A stretch of 64,000 bases of DNA from Paraphysomonas bandaiensis. Taxonomy: Eukaryota; Protista; Chrysophyceae. Made by a program: the position numbers and the translations under genes. Shown piece after piece: positions 27,618 to 59,495 of this stretch (the first letter of the stretch is position 1; the number at the start of each line of letters is the position of its first letter). The stretch spans positions 378,275 to 442,274 of the forward strand of contig CBFFRP010000406.1 in assembly GCA_965644295.1 (NCBI GenBank), read 5' to 3'. Under the pieces are notes generated by a model. The model saw only the letters and a program-made list of their open reading frames with translations, was not told the origin of the DNA and did not search any database.

Positions 27618-30600
27618 TTAACCTTTCTTGAACCGCTTCTTCTGATTCTTCTCAACTTCATTTGAAATGCTCCTCTTTTCCCCTGTGATAGTTTCTTCAT
27701 GGAGTTTAAAGAGCTTTGTAGATAACGCTTTTGTAAATATGTCGGCCGCCATATCCTTAGTCGATACATGAATCAATCTGGCTGTAGGAAACCTTCCATT
27801 TACGTGTTCCCGAACCCAGTGGTACTTTATCTGAATATGTTTTGATCTTTTGTGATAGACTGGATTTTCTGACAGATCTTTTGCACTCTTGCTGTCCATG
27901 AAGAATGGGGTTGGCTTCGTCAATGCGAGTCCTAGCTCTCGTAACACCCCCCGTAGCCACACCAGTTCTTGCATGGCCGCATATTCAGCCATATACTCGG
28001 ACTCCATACTGGAAGTTGCAACTGTAGTCTGCAGTTTGGACTGCCATGCGATTGCTCCAGCACATAAGAATACAATATAACCGGTAGTTGAACGTCTCGT
28101 TAGTATATCACCTGCCCAGTCCGCATCACTAAATACATGTAAATCAAACTTACTCCCACTGAATTTGATTCCTTTGCTGGTGGTGCCTCTCAAATATTTC
28201 AATAAATGAATAGCTAAACGACACGATGCGTATGTAGGATTACTGCTGTATCTCGATAGTAATCCGATTGCATAGGCGAGATCTGGTCTTGTGTGGAGTG
28301 CGAGATACAGGATTGCTCCAATAATACTACGATACGGAAATTTTGAGACCCAGTCCTCCTGTTCTGATGTAAGTTCCCGTTCTGCAGCTAGTAGTTCTTG
28401 TGCATTTGATGGCAACGGAGCTTCCTTATTCTTTCTACTGTTTCCCATGACATGGTTGAATTTCTGAATCACTTTCTCCGCATACTGTGATTGATCTAGT
28501 TTGAACCAGTCTTCGCCTCTCGTGATTCGAATATTTAGGAAACTTTGGCACTCTCCCATGTCCCTCATTTCAAACGTTTGGCAGAACTTGTTCTTGACAA
28601 AAACAAGGAATTCAAAATCCACAGATGCGATTATGATGTCATCTACATACAGGAGTAATAACGTAAGTTTGCCTTGGTGCCAACGATAATATAAGCAGGT
28701 ATCTAACACGCATGATCTAAACTGCATTGACTTTATGAATTTATCGATGTGGCGATTCCACTGACGCGGTGAGGCTCGTAAACCATATAGTGCTTTGATG
28801 AGTTTAAAACACCATCCATTGCTGAGCTCCTCATCTGGAGGTGGGTACATGTAGACATCTTCATCTAAATTTGCATAACAAAATGCAGAACTGACATCAA
28901 GCTGGTGTACATGCATATGGAACATAAAAGCAATTGCAATCACGAGCCTGATAGTTATCCCTTTGACAACCGGTGCAAATGTAGATGGCTCCTCCTCAGT
29001 TTTCTCCTGAAGATTTCCTAGTGCGACTAGTCGAGCTTTATACTTCTGTATGTTGCCTAGTATGTCACGCTTGAGTTTGTGAACATACTTACATCTGATT
29101 AATTTGACCCCAGATGGTCGACGTACTATCTTCAAAACGCCTCTTCGTAAAAGAGCTTTCTTCTCTATTCGTCTGGCTGTTCTCCATTCTTCCGCTTGAG
29201 GGGACCTCTCCGCCTCTAGAAAACTGTTCGGTTCATGGACGTGTTTATTCTCAGTACTCTCCTCTGAATCCATGACATTTACATCGGCATCCATTACCTC
29301 TATCATGTTAATTTCTCCTAACACTGAAGCATTAGCTAGCCTCCTCCGTAAACGCTTACGTTTCTCTGCATCCCTTTTAGATACTCTCTGTAGGGTATTA
29401 GTACTGTTAGAATTTATAGTATCAGTATATTCAGGTACTCCCTGTTTTACTGCTCGATCAGGTTCTCCCTGAGCTGCATCTGCATCAAGTACTCCTTGAG
29501 TCATATCTTCATCAGGTGCTCCCTGACTAATACCATGGTTAACTAGCTGCTCCTGATGGCTCTCAGGTGCTGGGATAGTGGACGTACTCCGTCCATCAGT
29601 GGTACTAGAAGCGTCCCTCGTTCCCGTATATCCCGTGTATCCAGGCGTATTCCTTGTCATTACCTGAACATCTTCTATATGTATGGGTACCTTCTGCTCA
29701 ATGTGGGTTCTCCCCGCAGTTACAAGTGACCGATAACCAACAATGACACCCTTTCTTTCTACCACTCTGGTGGTCTTGTACAACAGCCCGTCTTCATCGT
29801 CTATGTGAAAAGTCTTCACGAGATGCTGATAATCATTCACCGTCTTTGGTCTAGGTGCTGTTCGTACTCGAAGAGCGTCGATTTCTGCGTAATATTCTTC
29901 GGTGCGGGAAGGTATACTCTCATCTGTGAGTATGTGTACACACGTAATTACCTTATCGGTTGCTGGGAGATACACCTGGTATCCAACTTTATCTTCCGAA
30001 TATCCCACTAGGTATCCAATCTTTGATTTATCGTCCCAGTCCTTTCGCCTGTCCGCCTTAGGTGTCAATATATAAGTTTTGCACCCCCATACTCTAAAAT
30101 ATTTCAAACTGGGTGGCTGACCCGTGACATACTCATATGGGGACATGTATCCTCTGTCCGTCCTTGTAGGGAGTCTGATCAGTGTATAGCGAGCAGCATG
30201 ATACGCGTCTAACCAGAATGGAACCGGTAGGCCTGACTGCAACAACATCGCCAACGCCATCTCTGATGCAGTCCTGAATTTTCGCTCCTCTACTGCATTC
30301 ATTTCCGGACTATCTGTTGAAGACCAAGTATGTTTGTAGCAGCCTTGTGATCTCAAATAGCTCCTAAGTTCTTGATTTATGAGTTCTCCAGCTCCATCAG
30401 CGTGGTAGTGGTCCACTCTCAGCTTATATTGCCTAATCTCTCCTTCGAACACCTCTCTAAAAAACTGAATCACTTCTTCTTTAGTACGCTGGTTTACGCC
30501 TTTTACCCAGAACATCCTACTCGGGTGATGAGTTAGTTTGATCACGTAGCGCTCATCACCTCGAGCGGGAGTATTCAGAAATACTTGCACATCAGCCGAT

Positions 30601-32336
30601 ATGTCCGGCTTGACATCCGTATCCTCCTTTGTGTGAAACGAAACTCTCGTAATCTTTGATCTGGCACATATGCTACAGAGACAAGATTTTTTTAATGCAG
30701 TCTTCGATAGGTGCTTCCTCTGCAGATTTGAGCCCGTGAACAACATCCTTCTATGTGCCTCCGTTAGAGCCCCTTTGTTGAAATGGCCCATTCTCCTATG
30801 CAGCAGTTCCAGCTCGTCCTCACCAGTCCTATCGCTAAGATTTACTTCACAATTACTCGGTGTAGACACATCTGGAAGCTCCAACAGCTGCTGAGTTGGA
30901 ACTGCAGTCATTCCATTTTTCATGGGTCCCTCCAGTACCAGCTCACCGGTATTACAGTCATAAATTTGGATCCCATACCACACCGTGAATCGATAGCCCA
31001 TTTCGTTCAGCTTACGTCCGGAGCACAGGCATCGATTGATCTGATCTGAAATTTCTATGTCTCTCCATGCTCCACGGGAACCCACACTTGTGATATGAAT
31101 CTCTGATCCCTTCTTAGATCCGTTTATCACCTTTGATGTATTCATATGAGTGTCAAGCATGGTCACATCATTCATCAAGAACATTGATGATGAACAGCAT
31201 GTATCTATGTATGTATAGTGTTCAGCAGTACCAATCATACAACATGTGTCACTTTTATCATATATATCAACAGCACAGTCATAAAGCATATTCGCTTCGG
31301 ACTCCGAGTCAGACTCGGTTCCTCCTCTGCGGATATTCTCGAATGTGAAAACCTTCCCAGATTTCTGGGGTTTCTTGGTCTTTCCAGTCGAATTTCGGGG
31401 ACATTCGTTCGCGCGATGGTTTTTGGATTTGCATACTCTGCATCCTGTATATTCCTTACTGCCCGGTCTTTGTCCCTTCGTTTCCCCCTTTTTCTTCCTA
31501 CATTGTTCTGTATTATGATTGTGTATTATACCTTTCTTCGAGCAATAAGTGCACTTCCTCTTTGTAGATACTCTCTCTTTCTTTCGAGGCTTTTCAATAT
31601 GATTCAGCTCCTCCGTGCTCTTGCGCTTCTTCTCTATGATTTTCCTCCCATACTTGGTGTCGTCGAACTGTTCGATACGTTTGGATAGCAATTCATATGG
31701 TACATCATCGGGCATTAAATACAGGGCATAATTCAAACCGTCATATTCATCACTGATAATTCCCTCCTTCAGCCTACTAATTTTTGATTCTTCCGTTACC
31801 GTTTGGTTATGCGCCTGAAGTTCACGAAGAAGCAGCTCAAAACGCAGTACATACTCTTTCGCGGTCTCCCCTGGCTTCATCTCGAATGATCCAAACTGAG
31901 CAAGCAGAGCACTAATCTTGTTTTGTGTTCCCCCTTCAAAACACGATTTAAGAGTGCTAACCATCTCTCTGGCGCTGAACTTATTAACTCTTCCTTCAGC
32001 TGCCTTGAACTCCTTGTGCTTCAGATGAAACTTCTGCAGCGCCTTCGGAGATCGCTTCACCGCCTCTCTGCAGTATGAGTAGGCAATTGCATTCGCCTTC
32101 CAATACTTGTCCACCGCTTCTTTGTAGGACTTGGTCTCAAGACTATTCAGGGGTTGAATTCCGAAATCCTCTTCCTCTGGTGGCCTTTCTAGAGCCACCT
32201 CACTCTGCTCCTTTCTCATAAGGAACGTCTCAAAGTCTTCGATCCATTGTTCAACGTTGCTCTCGTCGAACCATGGAACATCAGCTCTATCCTCCTTCTC
32301 TCCTCCGCATTCGCTACCATATTGACTAAAGACCAT
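27618..32336 (-). CDS. Copia Gag-Pol polyprotein (Gag, protease, integrase, RT, RNase H)
   Basis: Zinc knuckle CRVCKSKNHRANEC; protease YIDTCCS; integrase HRRMGH..CSIC, SAD, HADGAGE, VEER; RT QLDVSSAF, LYGL, YVDD; RNase H SDADWAG, ESEY, DSKSA, ADIFTK. Integrase precedes RT, the copia order. First in-frame ATG is at 32336. Confidence 0.96.
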   Translation of the reverse strand: MVFSQYGSECGGEKEDRADVPWFDESNVEQWIEDFETFLMRKEQSEVALERPPEEEDFGIQPLNSLETKSYKEAVDKYWKANAIAYSYCREAVKRSPKALQKFHLKHKEFKAAEGRVNKFSAREMVSTLKSCFEGGTQNKISALLAQFGSFEMKPGETAKEYVLRFELLLRELQAHNQTVTEESKISRLKEGIISDEYDGLNYALYLMPDDVPYELLSKRIEQFDDTKYGRKIIEKKRKSTEELNHIEKPRKKERVSTKRKCTYCSKKGIIHNHNTEQCRKKKGETKGQRPGSKEYTGCRVCKSKNHRANECPRNSTGKTKKPQKSGKVFTFENIRRGGTESDSESEANMLYDCAVDIYDKSDTCCMIGTAEHYTYIDTCCSSSMFLMNDVTMLDTHMNTSKVINGSKKGSEIHITSVGSRGAWRDIEISDQINRCLCSGRKLNEMGYRFTVWYGIQIYDCNTGELVLEGPMKNGMTAVPTQQLLELPDVSTPSNCEVNLSDRTGEDELELLHRRMGHFNKGALTEAHRRMLFTGSNLQRKHLSKTALKKSCLCSICARSKITRVSFHTKEDTDVKPDISADVQVFLNTPARGDERYVIKLTHHPSRMFWVKGVNQRTKEEVIQFFREVFEGEIRQYKLRVDHYHADGAGELINQELRSYLRSQGCYKHTWSSTDSPEMNAVEERKFRTASEMALAMLLQSGLPVPFWLDAYHAARYTLIRLPTRTDRGYMSPYEYVTGQPPSLKYFRVWGCKTYILTPKADRRKDWDDKSKIGYLVGYSEDKVGYQVYLPATDKVITCVHILTDESIPSRTEEYYAEIDALRVRTAPRPKTVNDYQHLVKTFHIDDEDGLLYKTTRVVERKGVIVGYRSLVTAGRTHIEQKVPIHIEDVQVMTRNTPGYTGYTGTRDASSTTDGRSTSTIPAPESHQEQLVNHGISQGAPDEDMTQGVLDADAAQGEPDRAVKQGVPEYTDTINSNSTNTLQRVSKRDAEKRKRLRRRLANASVLGEINMIEVMDADVNVMDSEESTENKHVHEPNSFLEAERSPQAEEWRTARRIEKKALLRRGVLKIVRRPSGVKLIRCKYVHKLKRDILGNIQKYKARLVALGNLQEKTEEEPSTFAPVVKGITIRLVIAIAFMFHMHVHQLDVSSAFCYANLDEDVYMYPPPDEELSNGWCFKLIKALYGLRASPRQWNRHIDKFIKSMQFRSCVLDTCLYYRWHQGKLTLLLLYVDDIIIASVDFEFLVFVKNKFCQTFEMRDMGECQSFLNIRITRGEDWFKLDQSQYAEKVIQKFNHVMGNSRKNKEAPLPSNAQELLAAERELTSEQEDWVSKFPYRSIIGAILYLALHTRPDLAYAIGLLSRYSSNPTYASCRLAIHLLKYLRGTTSKGIKFSGSKFDLHVFSDADWAGDILTRRSTTGYIVFLCAGAIAWQSKLQTTVATSSMESEYMAEYAAMQELVWLRGVLRELGLALTKPTPFFMDSKSAKDLSENPVYHKRSKHIQIKYHWVREHVNGRFPTARLIHVSTKDMAADIFTKALSTKLFKLHEETITGEKRSISNEVEKNQKKRFKKG
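32311..32319 (-). promoter_or_regulatory. Primer-binding site TGGTAGCGA, probably for initiator tRNA-Met
   Basis: Abuts the 5' LTR, begins with TGG complementary to tRNA CCA, and resembles the Ty1 PBS TGGTAGCGCC. Confidence 0.75.
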
Positions 32337-32640
32337 TTTCAGATGATTAAGATCGTTGTAAGAGAAGTTTAAGTTAGTCAAACTAGATAGATTACTTTAT
32401 TATGATTGTATACACAATTGTGTGTGTTGTCATGTAGCACATGTCAACAACATGATAAATTATTTCGTTCATGTTAACCACTGCTCAACTTCCGTATCTT
32501 GAATCGTCATGATATAATACTTCAGTTTCACAGTTATAGCTATATAGCACCTTTTGACTATTGACTACGTATTACTGTTTTTCACATTGTATTTAACGTA
32601 TTCTACAGTACTATCTTAGAGAACCATACGTATTCCAACA
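32320..32640 (-). repeat. 5' LTR of the copia element
   Basis: Matches 27131-27451 and is followed by the PBS on the minus strand. Confidence 0.95.
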
Positions 32641-54137: not shown

Positions 54138-54447
54138 GTTAAAGTCAAGTAAACTGTGTCCAATCTAGAAGTATAAAATATTAGCTGGGAATTTCAATTA
54201 ACGAAACGTTGAATATCAATAATAAACCCTTCGGCATTTTTCTTAGAAATCGCGTGATCAGTAATAAAATGCTAGATTTTGGTAAGTCAACTGGCCCTGA
54301 GAAAAACACAAGATTGACATTGCAAAAGCGTTGCCAATATATGTCGCAACTTCTATGCTACACATCACACATATTACCACTACATCAAATGTTACCAAAC
54401 ATACAAGGTGCGTAGGACTCTTGTACCACGTATATGACTTCAAGAAT

Positions 54448-55582
54448 TTAGACATCTCTCACGGAAACATGCCCAGAACATTCCGTATCAAACTACACAA
54501 GATACAAATTACGAGTGCGAACCCTTCAAGGGTAACAACATACAACATTACATACATGTAACATCACACATACACTTACTATTTCTGTAAACTGCTTCTT
54601 GCCAGAAATGTCCACAGCAGCGCGCAAGCTTCTGATTTCTTCAGGACGTAGGTGATCTTTCGATTCTCGCAAACTAGTTTCAAACAGAAACACATAACAA
54701 AAACTCACTAGTACTAAATGCTACTTACAGCTCAACGATATAATCATCCAACTGTTCTTTAGATGCACCTGTGGACTCATCCCAATTCATGTCCCATGAT
54801 ACTTGCATGGTTCCTCCATACTCAACAGGTATCTGATCAGCATCAATATGCTCCAAAACACTAGGAAGAAAATCCTTCCCTAAAATCATGAACTTTTCAC
54901 TTGTTCGCGCATCAATAAATGGCTTAAATATTGCATACAGAGCAGGAAAATACCACGGACAATTGATGATGATGAGCTTGTGTAACCTTTCCGGAAAATA
55001 ATTTTGGTCGATGTCAAGTATCTGACGAATGTATCGGATACTTTCCATATCTAGCGATATGCTTACATGGCTCATGTCATTGACAACGATGCATTTCTGA
55101 ATGTCTTTACCGAATTTCTCTGAAGCATATTTGTATCGACTCGAGAAAATGTTGTTGCTTAGGACATGATACTGTACAAGTTCGTCAACAGTAAAATGCT
55201 GTAAAACTGTGGGAAAATAAGACTGAACTCTTCCTGTTTGTTCCCAGTAGATAGGATACCCCTCTTTGCTGAAGCCCTGATGAGCAACTGGAAATAGATT
55301 GCCATGCGGGTGTGCGTCTAGATAAGAGGGAGTCGCAAGTAATGTCAGTGGACTGAGAGGGATGTTATGTAAAGGAAGAGGATCCATCAGTGTGTGTCTC
55401 CACTCATACCACTTTAAAACCATCTCCGATGCCTTGTCGATGCTACCTGCTCTCGCTCGAAGGAACCGCACGCAGTCTCCATCACTCAGAGCGCCGCTGA
55501 TCTTACTTCCCACTGCATCTCTCAGGTCTGATATGTATGGCCTGTGGGCAGCGCTGTCATTGGTGAACACAGGATGAGACAT
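54448..55582 (-). CDS. Sec14/CRAL-TRIO lipid-binding protein
   Basis: DGDCVRFLRAR...WYEWR, GFSKEGYPIY, DQNYFPERLHKLIIINCPWYF...KPFIDART..K, IPVEYGG. The ORF-track stop at 54725 falls in a GTAAGT donor, and two short further exons extend to about 54448. Confidence 0.9.
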
Positions 55583-55947
55583 GTTTACTGATACGTATGA
55601 ATCACTGATAGCTGAGGATGCGACGCTGTTAATGGAGCTGCTGAGGGGATCGCGCTGCGCTGGGATGACTGCGTGTGTCTGTTTATACACTGCAGTGTAT
55701 CCACCATAGCGGAATACGTAAAGTACAGGAAATCATAGGGATCGTAGCCCGTTTAATACTTCATCCGGTCGAAGGATATATTATATCCAATGAGAGAAAT
55801 TTAAACGACAACACTGTCAATTCATTCGTCATAGTCCGTCACGGGACGGAGACGGTATTCTCTACCCGTACAGTCATCTGGCTGTGCTTCTATGCAGGTC
55901 GATCTCTACTTGTACCCAACACAGTCATAGAGTTCGAACAGCAATGG

Positions 55948-57945
55948 ATGCCGCCCCCTATTCATCACAGTAGACTCATTCCCTGGCCCAGAGGCCCTTC
56001 AAGCATATCAGTGCTGTTTCTCCTCTGCGTTGTGATCGAATCAGTGCCGTATAATTCTCTGCTATCGTCTACTTTTACGAACACTGATCAGAGCTTTGAA
56101 CTCTCTTATTTGGACGGGACTCGACTATTCGGAAATATATGCAATGACGTGGTGAGTATAGGCGAATTCAAGTGTGTGACTAGCTTCGGATGTATATCTC
56201 CCCATCACGTAAACTTCCTCTTCTCGAGCGAGGCCAGTGGTATTCTCGGTATGGGTTTCGCCAGCAATGATAAAGGCATCGCCTCCACTAATTTGTTCCG
56301 AGCCATAACGAGTAATGCATCTTATCCATCTTCCCCACCTGAAAAAGTGTTTACTTTGGTGATCGACAAATATCTTGGGGGCGGAGTTCTGCAGCTAGGT
56401 GGATATGACTTGCATAACATCGGGGTTGATGTCAACCGGGCTTTTGATGTATATATCCTCAATGAATGTGATCAAAGTTATGTTGGTACAAAGTCTTCTA
56501 TGGATTGCCCCTTCAAGCACTTTCGCGTGGCGATTGACTATTTGAAATTAGGTATGAATATGGTAGCATGTGTAGCTTTTGAACTTCTGATTGCTAACAC
56601 TGATATATATATAGGAGGCCATGTTATTTATGACAGTAGTACACTGGACAAGAAACTCACTGCAGTGGTGGACTCTGGAACTACTTGTCTGGTGCTTCCA
56701 TCCAGGGCAGGGACTGAGAGGGTGTATACAGGTGAAACCTCATTGTGTTTCACTGCTGTGGATCACACGCATACCGATTTCTTGTATATCTTCTCCGTAT
56801 TTTAGGAATATTCTGGTTTTCATGATGTGTCGTAGATGTGTACAAGTCCTTTTTGCAAAGATTGAGGTCTATTGGGGACTTGTCCACATCTAAGCCCTCT
56901 ATCTATGTTGGAATTGGAGGCAGTGAAGTCGAAATACTCTTTGATACATATAGTCTTGCACTAAATTCGGAGAGCGCAGAATGGCTAGACCACGATGTGT
57001 ACCACAGTTACCCTGTTGGGAGCGGTAACGGCACCATGTCTGATAACTCTGTGGACGATGGTCGCTACTATAGTCGTGCAGATGCCAAAAGTGATGCATA
57101 CGCGTCGGATTCTCCACACCCTGTTTGCGTAATCACAGTTCCAGATTTTCCTGATTTATTTATCCTCGGAGATGTATTTATGCAGAATAGTGCCATTATT
57201 CATAACATGAGTGACCCTCAAAAACCCTTTATCACTATAATTCCTAGAATAGGGAGTACAAGCCGAATTCGAAACAGTCGACTCAATGAATTATCTCATT
57301 CAGAAACCCATGGCCTCGCATTGAATCGGAATAGCTTGTCTAGTACAGGACCTGTTGTATCTCTATCGCTACAGCGACGAAATATATTGAAGAGAAACTT
57401 GATTGAACGGTTCTCTCGCGAAGCCAGTATGAATAATATTATAAAGAATAGAAGCACAACTTCTGACGTGATGTCATCAGTACGTCTTGAAGATATGATG
57501 GGCATCGAATATGTAGCAAGTATAGAAGTTGGAACCCCTCCTCAGAGAAACATTAGTATGATTGTGGACACGGGCTCAGGATCCATGGCTTTAATGTGAG
57601 TTGATATCGTTATATATAAAATTGCTCTGTTCATCTTATGCTATGCATGTGTATCAGCCGCGACTGCTATTGTCTGTTTTTTTGCTTATGATATCACCTG
57701 CTAATTATTGTCATGGCAGTACGGAGGGGTTGCCTTATGACACATCGTATAAGATACCCATCAATAGGATTCTAGTTCAGACACTGTATATTTTATTAGC
57801 AATTATGTCAGTTGTAGTGGGCACGTACATATATATCAAAACCTTTCCTCGGCGAAAACTTGATACAGCCCAACCCTATAGCGATTTACCTTTTGAGAGT
57901 GAGGAACATATCGAGTGTATTGAACTGACTGAATTTCCGGCCTAA
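55948..57945 (+). CDS. Pepsin-family (A1) aspartic protease, type I membrane protein, with circularly permuted motif order; 4 exons, 568 aa predicted
   Basis: Exons 55948-56551, 56615-56731, 56836-57595 and 57720-57945 splice in frame. Order is signal peptide, YNSLLSSTF, flap SYLDGT, GILGMGF, VDSGTT (56671), FILGDVF, prosegment-like linker, EYVASIEVGTPPQ...VDTGS (57567), TM, tail. Confidence 0.85.
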
Positions 57946-58914
57946 ATGGAACTCTTGGAAAAATCGCAGATCGAAAACAGTATTATATTCCAACTAGAAA
58001 AAGGGATATGTGTTGCACTTTCAACACTACCAAGCACTATTGATCAGTTATAGTAAGCTCATTGTTGTTGTTGTTGGTTGAATAGATCGTTTTGTCGTTG
58101 CGATATTATTTTATCCCCATTTTGTCTAAAAAAAAGCTCTTTTTGACCTGATTTTGTCTCTATAGGGCGCTCATATCAGCACCGGGCAAATATAGACATT
58201 CAACTTCAATATTCGGTTCAACAGAAGCTCACTTCTATCTTCATTATGATAATGACAGTCATATGTACGTGATTTCATTATAGTACACAATTATAGAGAA
58301 ACCACAATCATGAGCCAAACACCAAGAGCAGATCATCTAACTCCAGGTCATATTCCATCCTTCGACTGCTGTAGAAGATCACAACGATTCAGTGCAAGTG
58401 ATCTGTCTTCATATCCAGGACTTCGAAACAACTTCAAGAATATTACAGGAGAGTTTAAGTACCATATATGATGCTATATAGGTGGTTAGAAGCAGTGGCA
58501 CCCAGTTCTTTCAGGGTTTGATTAGTGAGTGATGTAGCCTTCGCGACGGGGCTGTATGTATCATTGTAATCGATGCCTTGGATTTGAGTAAAACCCTGTG
58601 CAACCAGTCGAGCTTCTCAGGATATTGTGTGTCTCATATCATACACACATCTTTCGATCACGTGAAACTTGCAGAGGTAAAGCCTGCTGTATATAAATTT
58701 GATGATGCTAATTAAGGCAATAAGAGGCCTCTCTTTCACCTTCAACTGTTTACATTTATCATCACACTTACAGTGTATACATATCACTGATTTGAAACTA
58801 TATGAGTTCTCATTTGTGTTATTAATGTTAATCAAGGAACATCTATTTCTAAATACAGCAAGCATGCTACAAATAGCTATACAATCTAATTAACTTTTCG
58901 ACGTCATGAGGATA

Positions 58915-59048
58915 AGCTACAATTTAACCTAGGGATAAGGAGTATCGTCCCTATTCTAAATTTTAAAACTCGGGCTTTTCGCCCTCGTTTCAGAATTTTG
59001 AGCGCGGGACGATATAGCCTCCTTATTGCCCGTGGTTAAATATAACTA
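58915..59048. mobile_element. Palindromic (fold-back) MITE-like element of about 130 bp
   Basis: Arms pair imperfectly: tttaacc/ggttaaa, ataaggag/ctccttat, tatcgtccc/gggacgata, around a centre ctcgggcttttcgccctcg. Confidence 0.75.
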
Positions 59049-59495
59049 TGTGTATGTACATGCATAGCCCGAACACAATAATATAGTCATATATTGTCCA
59101 AGCTCACCACAGACCACAGTACCAACGTATATTATAATTCAGGAATGATACTTATGAACATCTATTGCTAATAACAAGGCATTCACAACTATATGACTAT
59201 ATGAACACATAAACAATTTTCGGATTGTTAAAGTCAACATTACGTCTGCTAATTGCTGTGGCAGTATATATATGTTCAGTTTAATCAGAAATATTTACGG
59301 CAGTGCTATTGAACCAAAAGAATACTAATATGTCCAGATGAAAAACAATATATCGGTTACAATGCTTACATTTAAAATCCGTAAAAGACACTAGTAACCG
59401 TACAACGTACAATACAATAGTGATGATATCTGTAGAAGAGAACATATTGTGAAACACTCATCCAGGGATTAACAGTTCACTCACAAGGAATTGAA

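Follow-up and report, generated by a model that had tools for sequence, protein, structure and literature searches.

The canonical order of an aspartic protease of the pepsin family (MEROPS A1) runs from prosegment through DTGS lobe to DT/SGT lobe. The locus described here raises the question of whether nature has permuted this order, such that the strand with the first catalytic Asp stands at the C-terminus. The gene lies on the forward strand of a 64,000-nucleotide stretch of Paraphysomonas bandaiensis (Chrysophyceae) DNA, assembly GCA_965644295.1, contig CBFFRP010000406.1, positions 378,275 to 442,274. We call this whole stretch the window and use its coordinates unless another contig is named; the gene occupies 55948 to 57945. 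An earlier note, made from the sequence alone, had described an apparently circularly permuted, membrane-anchored pepsin at this place and had proposed that it was a selected permutation arising by tandem duplication and trimming. We find that the locus is one transcribed, spliced gene for a permuted A1 protease. The explanation that we favor as a whole, and consider very probable, is that D221 and D485 of this protein would form one active site, that the order would go back to a duplication and that an internal prosegment would keep the enzyme latent.

A pepsin-family protein with swapped segment order

The four exons join in frame and encode 568 amino acids with no internal stop, as the earlier note had read them. 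A hydrophobic, signal-like stretch (residues 18-33) precedes YNSLLSSTF (35-43), which is followed by SYLDG (53-57), GILGMGF (98-104), DSGT (221-224), and ILGDVF (350-355). Only then come a basic linker of 86 residues (377-462), IEYVASIEVGTPPQ (464-477), DTGS (485-488), a transmembrane (TM) helix (508-536), and a tail to residue 568. Each of these motifs is present once, and the matches to Pfam Asp (PF00026) are swapped in the same way: exon 1 matches profile positions 45-164 (E 7.4e-12, 45.8 bits), exon 2 positions 189-216, and the end of exon 3 positions 1-24 (E 1.4e-5, 25.1 bits), with exon 1 and the end of exon 3 both above the curated cut-off of 19.9 bits. The motif order and the swapped matches together show that the sequence observation was correct in every detail. 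The protein thus departs from the canonical A1 order, and its parts are those of the family, namely both catalytic motifs (DSGT and DTGS) with the fireman's-grip Thr/Ser, the flap Tyr (Y54 in SYLDG), and the psi-loop motifs GILGMGF and ILGDVF.

Contigs of four public runs (X1, X2, X3, and X16) were aligned to 54300-59300 as a check on the gene model. A single contig of 1,831 nucleotides (X1 record 2) covers 55932-56548, 56612-56729, 56834-57595, and 57720-58053, and all three GT..AG joints are identical in X1, X2, and X3, the last being a polyA metatranscriptomic RNA-Seq library. The three introns and both transcript ends therefore agree with the four-exon model and the 5′ end that had been proposed. 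The fourth run, X16, retains the introns and is presumably DNA; its contig of 4,101 nucleotides is collinear with 54300-58192, which argues against mis-assembly, and X16 may be the sample behind the genome.

Three faults feared in the earlier note were not found. An upstream exon with a normal DTGS segment was rejected: only about 300 bp separate the gene from a divergent CRAL/TRIO gene, no Asp-like open reading frame (ORF) lies there, transcripts stop at 55932, and no loose contig end hinting at a distant 5′ exon was seen in the RNA contigs over 54300-59300. Nor does the transcript run on into a second protease domain, with the stop codon at 57943-57945 and the RNA contig continuing only to 58053. 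The collinear DNA contig and the identical order in relatives speak against mis-assembly. The contig 5′ ends at 55932 and 55940 lie 16 and 8 nucleotides upstream of the ATG, and an out-of-frame ATG at 55944 opens a 9-codon ORF (55944-55973, MDAAPYSSQ and stop) that overlaps the start codon at 55948. A leader of only about 12 to 16 nucleotides with this overlapping ORF implies either leaky scanning or a transcription start upstream of the contig ends.

Permuted relatives across distant protist lineages

A search with exons 1 and 2 as the query found P0002, a 500-amino-acid protein from a transcript contig that is 39% identical and has the same order of signal, body, DSGT at 209, DTGS at 428, and TM helix. 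Further members are P0003, P0004, and a second clade that includes a Guillardia theta protein annotated as "aspartic endopeptidase, secreted" (P0014). A profile of the family run against 1.84 billion cluster representatives returned 91 matches at E<1e-30, many of them as a single stretch over the whole permuted profile. The permuted order, judged by motif order and by the order of segments matched to a canonical hidden Markov model (HMM), was found in 91 fetched proteins, or in 94 when lengths of up to 900 amino acids were admitted (33 to 37 non-redundant at 85% identity). Relatives with this order, which the earlier note had proposed to seek in stramenopile transcriptomes, occur in cryptophytes, Ancoracysta, and Andalucia. 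Among the members whose source name is available are several permuted paralogues of Guillardia theta (e.g., XP_005839274.1, XP_005818096.1, and XP_005839736.1) and proteins of the cryptophytes Rhodomonas abbreviata, Hanusia phi, and Teleaulax amphioxeia, of Ancoracysta twista, and of the jakobid Andalucia godoyi. The database labels of named members read only "Peptidase A1 domain-containing" or "hypothetical," and a Protein Atlas look-up returned generic Asp clusters only.

An alignment of 54 members shows no variation at either catalytic Asp, in the DTG triplet, or at the G and Q of GxPxQ, and little or none at the fireman's-grip Thr/Ser positions and at the Ser/Thr that follows Gly. That such distant lineages have kept the order and both Asp residues shows selection, as the earlier note had supposed. 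In the genomic contig of P0003 (locus L012), a GT..AG interval lies at the same position and phase as intron 3 of the window's gene, and the reading frame behind it encodes a TM helix, as judged from sequence alone, without RNA; the position and phase of intron 3 thus appear to be shared by the two genes.

These results bear on the least favorable reading of the locus, namely that it is without selected function and represents a tandem duplication decaying at 1.5 copies, an artefact of the gene model, or a faulty assembly. Any permutation that proceeds by duplication has to go through a 1.5-copy stage of this kind, and two-unit A1 proteins with an internal prosegment exist (P0122 and P0143). 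Against this stand an mRNA spliced in three runs, a collinear DNA contig and an intact frame, the same order with invariant catalytic residues in the 94 proteins of distant lineages, and the matching intron inferred in P0003. The gene is moreover single-copy, a search of this genome having returned one permuted copy and no second, and the transcript contigs L008 and X1 oppose a mis-called fusion of adjacent genes. We therefore consider a remnant or artefact highly improbable.

The family shows some variation of its own. Two Cys residues, one after DSGT-T and one in PxCV, hardly vary and point to a disulfide particular to the family. The Andalucia godoyi member P0101 has DSAT for DSGT and LGA for LGD, and other permuted members with altered catalytic motifs (P0093, P0107, P0129, and P0160) have no second D[TS]G[TS] recognizable by the pattern used; such members may be inactive paralogues. 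Charged, low-complexity N-terminal extensions of 125 to 340 residues mark the cryptophyte-type proteins P0014, P0033-P0035, P0041, P0074, and P0082 and are absent from the clade of the window's protein.

Predicted structure and active site

Structural models were built with family alignments (AF2) for P0002 and for residues 100-568 of the Guillardia protein P0078. The P0002 model has a mean predicted local distance difference test score (pLDDT) of 80.7 and a predicted template modeling score (pTM) of 0.79, with block means of 96, 93, and 90 over residues 411-440, where the relocated strand and DTGS lie. Its linker comprises a strand (356-364), a helix (369-375), and a disordered part (375-403, pLDDT <50), and its TM helix spans 446-476. 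The Guillardia model is similar (mean pLDDT 82.7, pTM 0.77), with a DTGS segment at 92-96, and its linker likewise has a strand and then a helix. Both models of these relatives have the bilobal pepsin fold. Foldseek returned matches of probability 1.0 to the cathepsin D zymogen, plasmepsin X, progastricsin, renin, pepsin, and BACE1, and no PDB entry with the permuted order was among the structural matches.

Structural alignment by VIA-align placed model residues 18-336 on residues 51/53-326 of pepsin, chymosin, and rhizopuspepsin (Z 21-22, root mean square deviation 2.7-3.0, about 255 residues). From this superposition, the new N-terminus corresponds to pepsin residue ∼51, and the chain has been opened in the Cys45-Cys50 loop, which bears out the claim that the opening lies between the DTGS strand and the YxPxxSST motif. 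In pepsin, the N-terminal strand runs next to the C-terminal one. The confidence of the C-terminal segment, the invariance of both catalytic motifs, and this adjacency of strands lead us to infer that D485 and D221 would meet in one pepsin-type active site. The earlier note had asked whether a predicted structure would bring the two Asp residues together as in pepsin; the models of the two relatives place the DTGS segment within a pepsin fold (pLDDT 90-96).

Completion of the active site in trans was considered as well, in which the DTGS segment enters the body of a neighboring molecule, such that a domain-swapped dimer or oligomer forms on the membrane and activity needs oligomerization. The length and partial disorder of the linker (residues 375-403 of the P0002 model) would permit this, and the TM helix adjoining the segment could drive clustering. 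The monomer models, in contrast, place the segment in cis (pLDDT 90-96, pTM 0.77-0.79), and family linkers as short as 18 to 34 residues still suffice for closure in cis because the two terminal strands of pepsin are neighbors. Completion in trans is therefore an unlikely arrangement in our view.

The internal linker and the origin of the arrangement

The basic linker was compared with canonical zymogens by means of an HMM built from 33 full-length sequences (signal peptide, prosegment, and enzyme), the consensus of which begins ...ARIPLKKRK.... One of the 33 (P0231) is a permuted fragment and was later dropped from the HMM for the analyses of two-unit proteins and family order. The window's protein matches this HMM in three pieces, with residues 34-285 on positions 101-322, 340-372 on 331-366, and 414-490 on 16-83, and this split pattern is unchanged in every version of the canonical HMM. 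The last piece spans prosegment, mature N-terminus, and DTGS of the canonical zymogen, with VVSLSLQRRNILKRNLIERF opposite RIPLKKRKSTREELKEQK, in agreement with the earlier description of a basic, prosegment-like stretch after ILGDVF. When the C-terminal segment was moved to the front, a single continuous match to positions 26-327 resulted (with an earlier HMM that included three permuted sequences). Other members (P0014, P0074, P0082, P0083, and P0132) reach HMM positions 10-18 with motifs such as LKLPIVK and LKIPLIKR. Across the family, the K+R content is 13.8% in the linker versus 7.7% in the body, and dibasic sites are 2.4-fold enriched in the linker (Wilcoxon P 0.007; 21 of 33 proteins). 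The alignment to the canonical prosegment makes the internal linker look like a retained ancestral zymogen prosegment.

A maximum likelihood tree built on the shared body columns only, leaving out the relocated segment, separated the 37 non-redundant permuted rows from the others by a single branch (Shimodaira-Hasegawa-like approximate likelihood ratio test, 94). One change accounts for the permuted order on this tree, whereas shuffles need about 29. The window's protein clusters with P0002 and P0003 (98), and the canonical A1 paralogues from the same genome (C357 and C437) fall on the opposite side. The permuted proteins form a group of their own, apart from all canonical rows of the tree, and are not placed within the BACE subfamily. 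Canonical-order A1 genes of this genome were located at C369:88786-89876 (-), C357:55479-56486 (+), and C437:53110-54120 (+); on the canonical side of the tree, the proteins of C357 and C437 share a very long branch.

The permuted arrangement would have a single origin, in which a zymogen gene was duplicated in tandem and the first copy then lost its 5′ part and the second its 3′ part. Such an origin, proposed in the earlier note, is supported by the alignment of the linker to the canonical prosegment. Tandem two-unit A1 proteins (P0122, P0143, and P0176) resemble the permutant in that body, prosegment, and N-terminal segment follow one another across the junction of the units; they differ in that both units are complete and score as ordinary canonical A1. 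P0122 and P0143 show that the intermediate arrangement occurs, with the qualification that such proteins may be fused gene calls and that kinship to the permuted group lies outside the scope of the tree.

Membrane anchor and topology

The window's protein was claimed to be membrane anchored, and a TM-like stretch was indeed found by hydropathy scan after DTG, both here and in 64 of the 81 permuted proteins with at least 45 residues in that place. A hydrophobic signal at the N-terminus is likewise present in most permuted members. The helix of the window's protein is followed by PRRK and an acidic tail with YSDL (Yxx-hydrophobic), the counterpart in P0002 being YSPI. The distance from Asp to the TM helix is 23 residues (family median, 51), and the stalk between DTGS and the helix is about 20 residues long. 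This topology is BACE-like, as assigned by hydropathy scan only, and predicts a type I membrane protein with the active site on the lumenal or extracellular face. The YSDL/YxxL tail and the positive residues after the helix suggest endosomal or lysosomal sorting, and the short stalk suggests cleavage of membrane-proximal substrates.

Proposed mechanism and its weighing

We propose that the C-terminal segment would fold back in cis to its canonical place and close the pepsin active site, while the internal prosegment would keep the enzyme latent. Low pH or processing at dibasic sites would then displace or excise this prosegment. Its removal would leave an enzyme of two chains, the smaller of them with one catalytic Asp and the membrane anchor, as the earlier note had suggested. 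The further suggestion that excision takes place in an acidic or late-secretory compartment is possible but doubtful. It would leave the equivalent of Asp32 on an anchored chain of about 80 to 100 residues (shorter if its N-terminus is also trimmed) and a body of about 340 residues held by beta-sheet contacts. If it were true, assembly or shedding of the body could turn activity at the membrane on or off, and we know of no A1 protease regulated in this way.

Another reading, which we hold to be rather unlikely, is that the linker stays uncut as a tether or permanent lid, the protein being a single chain or a pseudo-protease that serves as a membrane receptor or peptide binder. It draws on altered motifs within the family, such as DSAT and LGA of Andalucia, on the replacement of the psi-loop Asp by A in some family rows, and on the inactive membrane-bound A1 paralogues proposed in oomycetes (PMC3116508). 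Both catalytic Asp residues, the fireman's-grip positions, and the Ser/Thr after Gly are nevertheless invariant or nearly so, which would be unexpected for a non-enzyme, and the linker is basic like a prosegment and enriched in dibasic sites.

Several observations weigh against a latent, permuted enzyme of single origin. The structural models are those of relatives, one 39% identical and the other a cryptophyte paralogue, rather than of the window's protein itself. Sequential aligners cannot place the C-terminal segment, such that the seat of D485 close to D221 is a predicted one. Docking of residues 400-445 of P0002 to its body (21-340) scored 0.82, and one unrelated-peptide control scored 0.69, which is evidence neither way. 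Nearly all permuted members have Ala or Leu (SY[AL]D) at the position of the canonical A1 flap Gly76, and of the 32 rows with a residue at the flap Tyr column, 24 have Tyr and 8 have Phe. When the family linkers alone were compared with canonical prosegments by hhalign, the match was in register but weak (P 0.008, probability 4.9). Finally, the tree was made by a quick method, and its canonical rows are a biased sample of top hits only.

Gene features and genomic surroundings

The features of the gene are collected in Table 1.

Table 1. Features of the permuted protease gene, in window coordinates
Feature	Coordinates	Strand	Evidence
5′ untranslated region (UTR), minimal	55932..55947	+	RNA contig ends: X1 record 2 at 55932, X3 record 18 at 55940
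Exon 1	55948..56551	+	Reading frame, Asp profile 45-164, RNA contigs
Exon 1, signal-peptide-like stretch, h-region	55999-56046	+	
Exon 1, new N-terminus YNSLLSSTF	56050-56076	+	
Exon 1, flap SYLDG	56104-56118	+	
Exon 1, psi-loop GILGMGF	56239-56259	+	
Intron 1, 63 nt, GT..AG, in frame, stop-free	56552..56614	+	Joint in X1, X2, X3
Exon 2, second catalytic motif DSGT at 56671-56682	56615..56731	+	Asp profile 189-216, RNA
Intron 2, 104 nt, GT..AG	56732..56835	+	Joint in X1, X2, X3
Exon 3, first part: C-terminal lobe, ∼50-aa lineage-specific insertion, ILGDVF at 57162-57179	56836..57242	+	HMM 331-366
Exon 3, middle: basic internal linker, residues 377-462, dibasic RR and KR	57243..57500	+	
Linker residues 414-440, aligned to canonical A1 prosegment	57354-57434	+	Canonical-zymogen HMM
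Exon 3, end: relocated N-terminal strand IEYVASIEVGTPPQ, DTGS at 57567-57578	57501..57595	+	Asp profile 1-24
Intron 3, 124 nt, GT..AG	57596..57719	+	RNA contigs
Exon 4: short stalk, TM helix 57760-57846, basic stop-transfer residues, acidic YSDL tail, TAA	57720..57945	+	
3′ UTR	57946..58053	+	X1 record 2, X3 record 19

Downstream of the coding sequence, X3 record 19, from the polyA metatranscriptome, splices a GT..AG interval of 113 nucleotides (58053-58165) in the 3′ UTR and reaches 58440; X2 record 15 is unspliced across this interval and reads to 58193. The splice may represent an alternative 3′ UTR intron or a contig chimeric with the adjoining repeat. That repeat (58140-59140) is a highly repeated element over which the summed contig depth in the DNA-like run rises from about 465 to 12,000-62,000, and its contigs show many internal joints and loose ends. 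No Rfam family matched the region, and the element probably belongs to a family of dispersed or satellite repeats.

On the other side, the divergent CRAL/TRIO (Sec14-like) gene occupies 54300-55625 (-), with spliced introns at 54493-54579 and 54674-54728. Its contigs end at about 55608-55625, leaving a promoter region of about 300 bp common to both genes. Elsewhere in the window, a 1,587-amino-acid ORF at 27618-32381 (-) with RVT_2 and retroviral SH3-like domains is a copia-type retrotransposon polyprotein. The genome comprises 62.6 Mb in 669 contigs and has at least 7 silicon-transporter loci, short GT..AG introns, and copia-type elements.

Comparison with known systems

The earlier note knew of no natural A1 protease with this order, and our full-text literature search, the scope of which excluded subscription journals and MEROPS, likewise returned none with a naturally permuted catalytic domain. 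None appears in the 2026 CIRPIN permutation survey (PMC13552848) or in the Phytophthora aspartic protease family paper (PMC3116508). The only permutation linked to A1 proteases that the literature search returned is the swaposin, or plant-specific insert, of phytepsins (PMC8683733, PMC3320104), a natural circular permutation in which the permuted unit is an inserted saposin-like domain, not the catalytic domain. The pepsin family is among the best-studied enzymes and includes the drug targets renin, BACE1, plasmepsins, and cathepsin D, and yet a natural catalytic-domain permutant is apparently undescribed. Annotation and structure searches that depend on order label its members with the generic "Peptidase A1 domain-containing," and a family found across cryptophytes, Ancoracysta, and a jakobid went unnoticed. 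The conserved permuted lineage indicates that the fold and the active site tolerate moving the strand with the first catalytic Asp, that the duplication-and-trimming route would be preserved because the prosegment was left stranded inside the chain, and that a natural system is at hand for studying zymogen latching with an internal prosegment.

The permuted proteins share with pepsinogen, procathepsin D, and rhizopuspepsin the bilobal fold, DTGS and DSGT, the flap Tyr, and both hydrophobic-hydrophobic-Gly psi-loops, and, as in canonical zymogens, a basic prosegment-like segment stands directly before the N-terminal strand. They differ in that the prosegment and residues 1 to ∼45 follow the C-terminal lobe instead of preceding residue ∼51, making the prosegment internal, in that the chain is opened at the Cys45-Cys50 loop, which is no longer present, and in that the flap Gly76 is Ala or Leu. 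Mature two-chain cathepsin D is an active A1 enzyme of two non-covalently held chains with one catalytic Asp each, which is the state that excision of the linker is predicted to give here; in cathepsin D, by contrast, the cut is made late in a canonical chain, and neither chain is membrane anchored. BACE1 and BACE2 (memapsins), plasmepsin V, and the oomycete membrane-bound aspartic proteases (PMC3116508) resemble the permuted proteins in their type I topology, with signal peptide, lumenal A1 domain, single C-terminal TM helix, and short cytosolic tail with a sorting-type motif. Those enzymes have the canonical order and the TM helix after the C-terminal lobe, whereas in the permuted proteins the helix comes after the strand with the first catalytic Asp, in the window's protein at a distance of 23 residues.

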